Shown piece after piece: positions 47,301-50,690 of a DNA stretch of 64,000 bases. The DNA is from Chrysemys picta bellii. Taxonomy: Eukaryota. The notes under the pieces are model-generated. The model was given only the letters and a program-made list of their open reading frames with translations. It ran no database searches and had not been told where the DNA came from. Every line of letters starts with the position of its first letter. The stretch's first letter is position 1. Position numbers and translations under genes: made by a program. The stretch spans positions 17,856,001 through 17,920,000 of the forward strand of contig NC_088810.1 in the NCBI RefSeq assembly GCF_011386835.1, written 5' to 3'.

Positions 47301-50300
47301 TTTCCAACATGAACCATTTTGACCCCTCATTCTGAAATGACATTCAAAAGGTTTATTTGACCCGAATGAATTTTATCTATTTATTTATTTATTTTCAGTG
47401 AAAAAATAATAATGAAAATATTCTGCTTCGATTTGAAACAAACAGATTTTTTAAATTTTATTTTTCCGGGTAAGTCACTGAACTGAAAAATCAATTAGTC
47501 CCTCAGCTCTGATCTCGATGCCCAGAGGCAGAAGGAATGCCCCAGAGGGAGCAGCAGTGGTCTAAGAAATGAGAGGGATTCAGACAACGGAAGGGAATAG
47601 AAGGGAGATAAAAACAAATATTGCGAGTGGGTTGGATGTTCATGCCAGAGGCTGAAATGTCCCTGTTTCATCTGCTCTTTGCCCCTGCCAGAGCGGAACG
47701 TGTCACTACAACCCTGCCACGCGAGCCGCCACCTGCTCTAAGTTTGTTACACTCCCGTATGCCGATGAAGCAGCCCTGAAGGATGCCGTAGCCAATATCG
47801 GACCCGTGTCAGTCATGATAGATGCGGCACAGCCTTCGTTTTTCCTGTATAAGTCAGGTACGTTCTCTATAGCTTAGTGTTCTAGCTGAACACCTCGCGC
47901 CCGGTGCTGTACGTAGTTTGAAGCAGTGACGCCTTTGCTTTCTGTGGACTGTCTCTTTAAATTGGAAGAGGAATGTGGAGGAAGTTGCTATTTGTTTTGC
48001 AGCATGTTACTGAGGAGACGCGCACATCGTGCTCTTCTCCTGGAGACCTGGCTTTTGTTGCCTTGTTTTTTCCTTTTGGAAAATCTTTTGGACCCTCAGT
48101 AAATTGCAGTAATTATAAAACAAAAGCCCCAGGCGGGTGAAAGCACGTTTTGCTGTTTGTGAGTGGCTCCATCATGTGACCGCTTGGTTCAATGTGTGTT
48201 ACATGTCCCCCTCTAGCAGCTGGCTAGAGGATAAAAGCCTAGTACTGCTGGAAGCTAATCTCTTTTGTTCTATACATATGGTAAGTCTATACTGCACACC
48301 ACTGCTGGTGGCGTGCAGGGTAGGTGTAGCGACACACAGCTGTGAAAAGCAGCCTGTGTCCGCACTGCGCTGTGTAGCTATGCACAGCAGTGGAAGGTTC
48401 TGGCGCTGAAGGCAGTGGGAGCTGTCAGAGATTTTCCCCACTACCTCCCGCTGCTGGAGTCTTTCCCTACGGCAGAAAAAGGCCACAGCAGCAGGGAGGT
48501 AGCAGCATATGAGACTGCTGAAAATAGCAGTGTAGACAGGGGAGGCCCTGCTTGGGCATGTAGAGAGACGTGTAGAGCATGGTTCAGGTGTGTCTTTACT
48601 CCCCTAAGCCGTCTACACTGCTGTTTATACCTGTGTGGAGTGTGTGTGGAGTGTATATAGTCTATATGATTCCATAAGGAGTGTGCAGTGTGGACATACC
48701 CTTAGATTGGAAGCTCTTTGGGGCAGGGACGATCTTTTTGTTCTGAGTTTGTACAGCACCTAGCGCCACTGGGCCCTGGTCTATGTCTGGGGCTGGCAGG
48801 TGCTACTGTAACACAGATTAACCGATAACAACAAATGACCAGAGATGCTCCTTTAGCTCGAAAGGTGCTTCAAGGGCTAATGACCCCAGGTTCAATTCCT
48901 GCTGGTGTCTTAGTGTGTGTCATTAAAATAGCACCCCAGTGTGGACCCTTCACTCATGTTAATGTAATGCCAGTGCGCTGGGGTGAGCAGCAGGGACTGG
49001 AACTTCTGGATCTTAACGCATGAGCCTTTCTTGCTGGAGCTAAAAGACCCAACCTCTTTTAACCAAGGCTGTGACAGGCTCATCAACCGTTCTGTGGCCC
49101 AGCCACCACTAGAGGGAGACAGAACGCCCCACCGAGTCGGCGTGGCTTACATTATTCTGTGTTTTTTTTATTCATTTTGTGGGTTGTATTTACCTTCACC
49201 CTAGCGAGCACCGTCCACAGGTGCTGGAATAATTTGTACAGTGGGGGTGCTGAGAGCCATTGAACCAAACTGTAAACCCTGTATATGATGGGAACCACTT
49301 CAAGCCAGGGGGTGCGGCAGGGTCCCCAGCACCCCTAGTTCCAGCACCTCTGGCACCGTCAGACATTGTGGGGCCAATTTTATGCTGCACCAGACTCAGC
49401 TCAGGTCAGCTCTGCCCAGTTCTGGGGTTGAGACGGCTCGTGGGATAATTTAGGCAGCCTTGGGTGTTGCATAAGATATGGCAGCCCAAGTCAAGCTACC
49501 TAATGGGAGCAACACCCCACAGACTTGCTATAGACCCTAACCCCGGCTGGAATGTCCCCTACGCCAGAGCTTCCCGAACGAGGCCTCCTAAGACAGTTTG
49601 TGGCTGTCTGACCCGGTTCCTGTGCTGGGGGAATTCTCCCCTGGCTCGATTTGGGGCCTTTAAGGGAACATTGTGAGGGGACCATAGTGGGAGGAAGATT
49701 ACTTCCTGGTGTTTATGGGAGTTGCGATACTGAAATAGCTGAAGGGATGGATGGGTAAATGGAGCCTTTCATTACTGGGGCTTAGTTCAGCTGTACCAGT
49801 CAGACGGCCTTCTCTAGCTGACATCTGTTTGGTGGCCTGTAGAGAGTCTGAGTCCAGTTCTTGGGGGCAGGTGCCCACCTCACACTAGCCATGTTGGCCG
49901 CCTCAGTAGGAGAGCCAATGATTGTACAAGGCCACGGAAACTAAACTTCCCAGTGGACAGCGCGCTGGACTGAGGCTTAGGAGAGCTGGGTTCTATTCCC
50001 AGGGCAAGTCACTGCCTGCTCTGTGCCTCAGTTGCCCCATCTGCACAATGGAGAAAATGAGACTGACTGCTTTGTGATCTACTGGTGAAAAGAGTGAGGG
50101 ATTGTTATTATTACCCCCTTACAGGGGACCAGGATAGAGGCATGTTGGTACCATGTGGGTGCTGTTGCTCACAACAGCTTTACCGAGCAGAGAAGTCCCT
50201 GCTGGGTTTTTTTCCTCCCACGTGATTGTGCATTCTTTCCTTCCAGGAGTCTACGATGATCCACGTTGCACTCAAGAGCCGAATCATGCAGTTCTAGTTA

Positions 50301-50690
50301 TCGGCTATGGCACCCTGGCTGGGAAGGACTTTTGGCTTGTGAAAAACAGGTAAAAGAAAATCCATCACTGAGCCGTATTTATCTATAGACTAACGTGTTC
50401 CTGGGATAGGTGTGTGGCATGAGTGAGCTGTGTAGAGCTGTGCATGTATGTGTCTGTACTACTGTGAATTGGATGCACTTTGATAAACAGCTTGAAACAC
50501 ATGAGAAAATGGGGGAGGGGAACCCTGCCTATAAAGAAAGGTGTTTTATTCTCTTAATATTTAATTGTGTGTTATTTCTCCTTCCAACAGCTGGGGCGTA
50601 AAGTTTGGTGACAAAGGGTACATTCGAATGTCCAGGAACAAAGGAAACCACTGTGGGATTGCCAGCTACGGTTCTTATCCACAAATATAG
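41202..50690 (+). CDS. CTSS: Cathepsin S paralog 1 (divergent active site), spliced CDS: 41202-41333, 43471-43593, 45187-45336, 45417-45638, 47692-47857, 50247-50349, 50591-50690 (996 nt, 331 aa)
   Basis: GT-AG introns and an open frame. The protein reads [41 protein letters not shown]...[23 protein letters not shown]...RAATCSK...[30 protein letters not shown]...WLVKNSWG...[17 protein letters not shown]-x-T, KLKTG, SAQNL and YPQI are cathepsin S features. The catalytic C, H and N are intact. Confidence 0.94.
42262..43380 (-). mobile_element. CR1 LINE, antisense in CTSS copy 1 intron 2
   Basis: Open ORF2 C-terminus with FADDTKL; reversed (ATTCTATG)-type tail at 42262; candidate TSD AAAGCACT at 42254-42261 and 43381-43388. 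Confidence 0.95.
43471..43593 (+). CDS. CTSS: CTSS copy 1 exon 3
   Basis: tccag|[14 protein letters not shown]...MNHLADM|gtaagt. Confidence 0.95.
45187..45336 (+). CDS. CTSS: CTSS copy 1 exon 4
   Basis: actag|[11 protein letters not shown]...[10 protein letters not shown]|gtggga. Confidence 0.95.
45417..45638 (+). CDS. CTSS: CTSS copy 1 exon 5 (catalytic Cys codon 45432-45434)
   Basis: ttcag|[10 protein letters not shown]...[11 protein letters not shown]...YPYTAQ|gtgggt, 222 nt. Confidence 0.95.
45671..46685. mobile_element. Cluster of Harbinger-type MITEs in CTSS copy 1 intron 5 (shorter counterpart ~60560-60955 in copy 2)
   Basis: Repeated GTCTACACTGCA / TGCAGTGTAGAC terminal motifs. Confidence 0.65.
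47692..47857 (+). CDS. CTSS: CTSS copy 1 exon 6
   Basis: gccag|[17 protein letters not shown]...[18 protein letters not shown]|gtacgt. Confidence 0.95.
50247..50349 (+). CDS. CTSS: CTSS copy 1 exon 7 (His codon 50285, Asn codon 50345)
   Basis: tccag|[21 protein letters not shown]...WLVKNS|gtaaaa. Confidence 0.95.
50591..50690 (+). CDS. CTSS: CTSS copy 1 exon 8, coding part
   Basis: aacag|[35 protein letters not shown]. Confidence 0.95.

Follow-up and report, generated by a model that had tools for sequence, protein, structure and literature searches.

The subject of this report is a cathepsin S gene, hereafter copy 1, located in a 64,000-nucleotide stretch of the painted turtle genome (the window; Chrysemys picta bellii, assembly GCF_011386835.1, contig NC_088810.1, positions 17,856,001 to 17,920,000 of the forward strand). 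Coordinates are counted from the first nucleotide of the window, and residues follow papain numbering. With a probability of about 0.6, copy 1 is an old functional paralog in which an early rebuilding of the substrate groove has been maintained, with a later change at the floor of the S2 pocket in the emydid turtles. It is the first gene of a turtle-specific tandem cathepsin S array, derived from a parent paralog that probably already had a shallower S2 pocket by virtue of Ile133, Thr157, and Ala160 in place of Ala133, Val157, and Gly160. The clade of copy 1 and its orthologs would then have gained a cluster of cleft replacements, namely A21F, S64L, and G65D in the S1/S3 wall, K137A in S1', and T157P at the S2 entrance, and the emydids would later have replaced Ile133 with Met133.

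The product is expected to be an active endopeptidase. Its S2 pocket is probably shallower, with Met133 and Ala160 on the floor, and the entrance probably stiffer and differently shaped by Pro157, which lies two residues before the catalytic histidine. Because the pocket would be shallower and its entrance altered, smaller or otherwise different P2 side chains would be preferred in comparison with copy 2, the second cathepsin S gene of the window (Ala133/Val157/Gly160). The acidic Asp65 and the loss of Lys137 would shift the P1/P3/P1' preference further. As judged from the sequences, Tyr205 and Tyr67, both ordinary in turtles, would play no part in the change.

Structure and family of copy 1

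Copy 1 consists of seven coding exons (exons 2 to 8), the introns of which are all GT-AG, and its 996 coding bases correspond to 331 codons plus the stop. The exons are as follows.

41202..41333, + strand, exon 2: start codon (ATG at 41202), signal peptide, and start of the propeptide, matching the amino-terminal ends of cathepsin S-like proteins of turtles; GT donor after 41333
43471..43593, + strand, exon 3: propeptide, I29 inhibitor domain; AG/GT boundaries
45187..45336, + strand, exon 4: last part of the propeptide and first residues of the mature enzyme, including Gln19 (45334-45336); AG/GT boundaries
45417..45638, + strand, exon 5: alignable with residues 20-94 of human cathepsin S; Phe21, Ser23, Cys25 (TGC 45432-45434), Leu64, Asp65, Tyr67 (45564-45566), Met68 (45567-45569)
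47692..47857, + strand, exon 6: reads GPVSV-M-IDA; Met133 (ATG 47815-47817), Ala137 (47827-47829)
50247..50349, + strand, exon 7: Pro157 (CCG 50279-50281), Asn158, His159 (CAT 50285-50287), Ala160 (GCA 50288-50290), Asn175 (AAC 50345-50347)
50591..50690, + strand, exon 8: Trp177, Tyr205 (TAC 50667-50669), stop codon 50688-50690

When the exons were searched one by one against Pfam, exon 3 matched PF08246 at 37.9 bits (cut-off 24.4) and exons 5 to 8 matched PF00112 at 94, 32, 32.9, and 30.7 bits, respectively (cut-off 20.7). With these profile matches above the curated cut-offs, copy 1 belongs to the papain family C1A with an I29 propeptide. The catalytic set is complete, with Gln19 (CAG 45334), Cys25 (TGC 45432), His159 (CAT 50285), and Asn175 (AAC 50345). 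Cathepsin S chains head the PDB searches of each exon, with E-values that beat those of the top-scoring cathepsin K, L, or V chain by several orders of magnitude; tree and similarity alike place copy 1 plainly in cathepsin S rather than cathepsin K.

Residues of the S2 pocket

Exons 6 to 8 align without gaps to human cathepsin S of known structure (phmmer), such that Met133 corresponds to human Gly137 (papain 133), Pro157 to Val162 (papain 157), Ala160 to Gly165 (papain 160), and Tyr205 to Phe211 (papain 205). The S2 pocket of the human enzyme is formed by Phe67/Met68/Gly133/Val157/Gly160/Phe205, and the S2 roles of these positions have been reviewed (PMC9712828); the positions and human residues given in a first-pass annotation of this DNA agree with that review. 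The codons it listed were likewise found as given, with ATG at 47815, CCG at 50279, GCA at 50288, and TAC at 50667 in copy 1 and GCC at 62052 in copy 2. The annotation had also proposed a comparison with copy 2 at positions 157, 160, and 205. Exons 7 and 8 of copy 2 lie beyond the window, the end of which falls ~24 bases short of exon 7. Exons 4 to 6, in turn, are identical to the Chrysemys picta bellii protein XP_065430298, which reads Val157/Gly160/Tyr205.

How usual the copy 1 residues are was judged from 137 cluster representatives of non-turtle cathepsin S, collected by word searches that started from a bird cathepsin S, itself among the matches of the exon 6 search described below, and a tortoise paralog. 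The residues scored at the four positions are listed below.

Position 133: Ala 94, Gly 18, Ser 17, Asn 2, Cys 1
Position 157: Val 108, Ile 8, Pro 2 (skinks), Gly 3, Ala 2, His 2, Thr 1, Met 1, Lys 1
Position 160: Gly 81, Ala 46, Thr 1
Position 205: Tyr 101, Phe 12, Gln 6, six others

None of the 132 representatives scored at position 133 has Met, Ile, or Val. Residue 133 was also counted in a wider papain set of 150 representatives, mostly fragments, from an exhaustive protein search with exon 6: Ala occurs in 104 and Gly in 25, the rest are scattered, and Met occurs in 0 of the 150. The first-pass annotation had allowed that Met133 and Pro157 might prove to be ordinary states elsewhere. They did not, with Met133 in 0 of 132 and Pro157 in 2 of 128 scored non-turtle sequences, both from skinks. 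Pro157 is occasionally present in other papain-like proteins, and thus the papain fold tolerates it. Tyr205 (101 of 125 scored) is the vertebrate norm, and Ala160 (46 of 128) is common; neither counts as remodeling. Position 160 does differ between copies 1 and 2, yet alanine is common there among sauropsids. Of the remodeling at four sites that had been claimed, the part concerning residues 133 and 157 therefore stands, whereas Tyr205 is the majority state and residue 160 is weakly unusual.

Gly133, Val157, and Phe205 have been called the "unique" S2 residues of mammalian cathepsin S (PMC9712828). The trio is missing from copy 1 (Met133/Pro157/Tyr205), and human Gly133 and Phe205 are minority states among the non-turtle sequences. 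Since most non-mammalian cathepsins S lack Gly133 and Phe205, the trio defines the mammalian enzyme rather than the orthogroup.

The copy 1 clade

In a maximum-likelihood tree, the turtle copies all group together in a single clade nested in sauropsid cathepsin S (support 100/96). The copy 1 clade within it is supported at 100/99 in the protein tree, where its inner topology is that of the species tree, and at 100 in the codon tree. Its members, one gene each, come from Emys, Mauremys mutica, Pangshura, Chelonoidis, and Gopherus flavomarginatus. The Emys protein represents copy 1 in the protein tree, and copy 1 itself enters the codon tree through its exon codons; over its exons it shares 95% identity with the Emys member and has the same cleft residues. 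Copy 1 carries all five signature residues of the clade (Phe21/Leu64/Asp65/Ala137/Pro157). The clade groups with paralogs that have Ile133/Thr157 (or Met157)/Ala160 (support 85/96).

Among the genomes sampled, the clade is known from the Emydidae, Geoemydidae, and Testudinidae only. The signature GC-L-D-G with Phe21 and Pro157 was not found in the proteins fetched from sea, snapping, softshell, and side-necked turtles. The split between the Emydidae and the Geoemydidae plus Testudinidae dates to the Late Cretaceous, and the copy 1 gene is thus old. In all four of the other species fetched, as in the window, the ortholog opens the array, and the 10 kb preceding it contain no cathepsin S exon.

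An artifact of assembly or annotation, by which sequencing errors or a chimera of paralogs had produced the unusual residues, deserves mention given that the tandem paralogs are 72-93% identical and mis-assembly is possible. The Emys orbicularis ortholog, from an independent assembly, has identical codons at positions 21, 23, 64, 65, 133, 157, and 160, and hence the copy 1 residues are not sequencing errors. Exon order and first-in-array position are the same in four other species, and a sequencing contig described below matches copy 1 exactly over 45489-45638. An artifact is therefore highly improbable.

Replacements fixed in the clade

Fixed differences were taken codon by codon between the five clade members and seven other turtle genes, and changes were placed on lineages by these lists together with three-taxon counts. 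Fixed replacements occur at positions 21, 64, 65, about 92, 137, 155, and 157. They include A21F (GCC to TTC), S64L (AGC to CTG), G65D, and K137A, where the comparators have Lys, Arg, or Thr and the clade has Ala. Position 155 became Gln or Glu, and residue 157, which is Thr, Met, or Val in the comparators, is Pro in the clade (ACG to CCG). The sole fixed synonymous difference is GCG to GCA at position 160. Phe21, Leu64, Asp65, Ala137, and Pro157 are invariant across the five species. A list of 26 subsite positions for S1, S2, S3, and S1' is available (PMC9712828), and five of the seven fixed replacements fall within it (descriptive hypergeometric P = 3e-4). The cleft share of replacements is 71%, as compared to a neutral share of 12%; when two reference genes were required to agree, the enrichment had P = 0.01-0.05.

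The codons indicate the order of events. Met133 is encoded by ATG only in painted turtle copy 1 and Emys, whereas the codon is ATC (Ile) in the sister paralogs and in tortoises and GTC (Val) in geoemydids. Met133 is thus a later, emydid-only single step from ATC to ATG, and Pro157 a single step from ACG to CCG on the stem of the clade; Ala160 and a bulky residue 133 were inherited from the parent paralog. The first-pass annotation had described the difference between Met133 and Ala133 of copy 2 as a three-nucleotide codon change. ATG and GCC do differ at all three bases, but it was not one event: distant paralogs were being compared and, since the sister paralogs have ATC, the gap sums several older single steps.

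The remaining fixed replacement, that at about position 92, concerns the first codon of exon 6 (47692-47694), which encodes Ser in the copy 1 clade and Asn in all other turtle paralogs, and by this change the N-G-T glycosylation sequon of the mature enzyme is gone in the clade.

Constraint on the clade

The copy 1 gene is present in five species of three families with no stops or frameshifts and with all splice sites GT-AG. Pairwise ratios of nonsynonymous to synonymous substitution rates (dN/dS, Nei-Gojobori) among the five orthologs are 0.32-0.48. They are significantly below 1 in nine of the ten pairs; in the tenth, which is the closest, the changes are too few for a test. In three-taxon counts, the emydid lineage shows no acceleration over the sister paralog (15-17 versus 8-12 unique replacements, P = 0.2-0.5), whereas the Mauremys, Chelonoidis, and Gopherus lineages do (20-25 versus 5-12, P = 0.004-0.09).

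These values bear on the alternative that copy 1 is a redundant duplicate under relaxed constraint, its cleft drifting toward that of a dead enzyme or pseudogene, with Met133 and Pro157 representing tolerated noise. Such drift would account for a clade dN/dS above that of the sister paralogs and for the loss of Cys25 in the tortoises and geoemydids, the lineages of which are accelerated 2-3 fold. It would also fit with the variation among orthologs at positions 23, 68, 133, and 160 and with a one-codon deletion in exon 5 of painted turtle copy 1 (IIDN-GID, ~45600-45610), a codon that is present in all other turtle copies, the Emys ortholog included. Drift does not readily explain the excess of cleft replacements over the neutral share, the unaccelerated emydid lineage, or the existence of a spliced contig. 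Given the intact genes in three families, the dN/dS values below 1, and the invariant new cleft residues, drift toward a dead enzyme is the less likely account, and we regard it as unlikely.

The spliced contig comes from a comparison of four sequencing runs with positions 45100-50800. In run X1, the assignment of which as RNA is by guess only, a contig joins 45638 to 47692 (exon 5 to exon 6) with GT..AG ends and 100% identity; a contig of this run covers 45489-45638 with zero differences and stops exactly at the end of exon 5. A contig from run X10, which is recorded as RNA, covers the start of exon 5. Within intron 6, at 49240-49291, short contigs of very high depth (up to hundreds) occur in all four runs; this segment most likely belongs to some repeat or strongly expressed element that has nothing to do with the gene.

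Several observations weigh against copy 1 being an old functional paralog with a rebuilt and maintained groove. Under the GY94 model, dN/dS for the clade versus the other paralogs is 0.52 versus 0.38 overall and 0.62 versus 0.40 for the mature part, and matched species pairs give the following mature-part values.

Emys-Chelonoidis: copy 1 clade 0.50, comparator paralog 0.20
Gopherus-Mauremys: copy 1 clade 0.38, comparator paralog 0.22

Constraint on the clade is looser than that on its sister paralogs. The orthologs of Mauremys, Pangshura, Chelonoidis, and Gopherus have serine in place of the catalytic Cys25, and the pocket itself is not uniform among orthologs at the four varying positions given above. 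S64L and G65D are adjacent, with four of their six bases changed, and because these two codons may represent one mutational event the enrichment count is weakened, although P is still small. In favor of the rebuilt groove, across 27 turtle cathepsin S proteins the mean entropy of subsite residues is 0.66 bits versus 0.28 bits in the rest of the mature enzyme (Mann-Whitney P = 0.004), and subsite residues make up eight of the 20 most variable sites (P = 0.001), but the subsite statistics treat related sequences as independent, such that their P values are descriptive only. The evidence for expression amounts to one joint in one run, X1, with its guessed label. Finally, an AlphaFold model of the Emys ortholog was poor (35-row alignment, mean predicted local distance difference test score, pLDDT, of 61.5) and was used for no claim.

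The directed change in specificity that had first been suggested is thus partly supported by the sequence comparisons: the concentration of invariant replacements in the cleft and the dN/dS values below 1 speak for it, and the looser constraint, the Ser25 orthologs, and the varying pocket sites speak against it.

Serine at position 25

Codon 25 is TGC in painted turtle copy 1 and Emys, TCC in Mauremys mutica and Gopherus flavomarginatus, and AGC in Chelonoidis; the ortholog proteins of Pangshura and G. agassizii also read Ser25. TCC and AGC are not interconvertible by a single synonymous step. The Ser25 codons lie in the following copies of exon 5.

L002:20036-20260, Mauremys mutica
L003:12246-12470, Chelonoidis abingdonii
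L004:14535-14759, Gopherus flavomarginatus

The Ser25 genes have intact exons and splice sites, and dN/dS among the Ser25 species is 0.32-0.41. Since these orthologs keep intact genes, the function of the clade does not everywhere depend on a cysteine nucleophile. Cathepsin L-like proteins with a natural Ser25 have been described (PMC5840727), and the same paper cites a report by which Cys-to-Ser variants of congopain do not necessarily lose their proteolytic ability.

These facts can be taken further, to a selected function other than cysteine proteolysis, in which the protein would serve in binding, as a decoy, or as a hydrolase working through Ser25, with the emydids retaining the ancestral cysteine and the cleft binding a ligand. 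The presence of Ser25 in four genera, in both serine codon families, in genes that are intact and constrained would be expected of such a function, and the precedents just cited are in keeping with it. Painted turtle copy 1 and Emys, however, have Cys25, His159, Asn175, and Gln19 all in place, and the emydid lineage has the same rate of evolution as its sister, which is catalytically standard. This explanation is quite improbable. A broader notion, that the clade represents a vertebrate cathepsin changing its chemistry, with the S1-S2-S1' groove serving a new, possibly non-proteolytic or serine-based function, is doubtful as well. Copy 1 itself, having kept Cys25, does not qualify as a Ser25 protein or pseudoprotease.

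The tandem array and neighboring genes

Turtle genomes contain several "cathepsin S-like" genes each, the count being four or more in Mauremys reevesii and three or more in Chelonoidis. No paper on a turtle cathepsin S array or duplication was found in the literature searched, and the genes are merely auto-annotated as "cathepsin S-like." Variation in S2 is seen elsewhere in the array. Another paralog of Emys orbicularis (L007:774-3005, partial, upstream of XP_065276062) has Ser133/Thr157/Ala160/Gln205, and XP_039369318 of Mauremys reevesii has Ala133/Pro157/Ala160/Asp205; as these paralogs vary there too, S2 diversification spans the whole array and not just copy 1.

The other cathepsin genes of the window are as follows.

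10086..18445, + strand: cathepsin K gene with cathepsin-K-type motifs and tblastn matches; the cathepsin S array lies downstream
57998..62094, + strand: copy 2, exons 2-6 at 57998-58129, 58290-58412, 60078-60227, 60307-60531, and 61929-62094; Gly23, Ser64, Gly65, Tyr67, Ile68, Ala133 (GCC 62052-62054)

The cathepsin K gene looks complete, with Tyr-type motifs. The cathepsin S array adjoins it on the same strand, the position expected of the orthogroup; the human cathepsin S gene adjoins cathepsin K likewise. In exons 2-4, copies 1 (41202-45336) and 2 (57998-60227) differ by seven replacements and no synonymous changes, whereas the introns around these exons are only ~83-93% identical and exons 5-6 have a synonymous divergence (dS) of ~0.18. 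This pattern in the propeptide exons looks like concerted evolution or unusual constraint.

Duplicates are also seen outside of turtles. Many birds (proteins P0151-P0172) have a second "cathepsin S-like" gene bearing Trp67, Lys/Arg68, and Ser133, and the alligator (P0184/P0198) has one with Ile133. The tree pairs the two Rhea copies together and the two alligator copies together, which points to separate duplications, or concerted evolution, within each lineage. The alligator Ile133 gene was considered as an ortholog of the turtle Ile133 paralogs and rejected, the copies of each lineage pairing together on the tree, although concerted evolution could hide an older alligator-turtle orthology.

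Comparison with known systems

The best match of known structure for each copy 1 exon tested is human or mouse cathepsin S (PDB 1NPZ, 2FYE, 4BPV), with which copy 1 shares the propeptide, the catalytic residues, and the cysteine pattern. Unlike the human S2 pocket, that of copy 1 is formed by Tyr67/Met68/Met133/Pro157/Ala160/Tyr205, and Phe21, Ser23, Leu64, Asp65, and Ala137 are further differences. The ordinary sauropsid cathepsins S and copy 2 are like copy 1 in Tyr205, Tyr/Phe67, Met/Ile68, exon structure, and a propeptide-exon identity of >85%. They have Ala133/Val157/Gly(or Ala)160, Gly23, Ser/Asn64, and Gly65, and copy 1 thus departs from them at four S1/S3/S1' positions in addition to residues 133 and 157. 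The closest relatives of copy 1 on the tree, the turtle Ile133/Thr157/Ala160 paralogs (Gopherus evgoodei XP_030397854, Natator XP_074794291), share with it a bulky residue 133, Ala160, and Tyr67/Met68/Tyr205. They differ from it in having Ala or Pro21, Gly23, Ser64, Gly65, Lys/Arg/Thr137, and Thr/Met157.

Cathepsin S trims the invariant chain for antigen presentation by major histocompatibility complex class II and degrades matrix proteins, and to our knowledge it is a single gene in mammals. The members of the turtle array differ most at the residues that choose the substrate, and copy 1 is an old member with five cleft positions rebuilt. If the specificities do differ, the array would amount to a set of S2/S1 variants made by nature in vertebrates, from which cathepsin selectivity could be understood and engineered, and would hint at lineage-specific antigen processing or tissue remodeling. 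The Ser25 orthologs offer a natural test of the papain fold without its cysteine.

Cathepsin K has Tyr67, Met68, and Ala160 in common with copy 1 (PMC9712828); unlike copy 1, it has Ala133, Leu157, and Leu205. A parallel in pattern is provided by the multi-copy cathepsin L families of parasitic flatworms (Fasciola; EnCL1-6 of Eudiplozoon nipponicum, PMC5840727), which are lineage-specific expansions whose paralogs differ mainly at S2 positions 67, 133, 157, and 205, and one of which, EnCL2 of E. nipponicum, has Ser25 (PMC5840727). The flatworm genes encode invertebrate cathepsins L that are secreted for digestion, whereas the turtle array is one of vertebrate cathepsin S.

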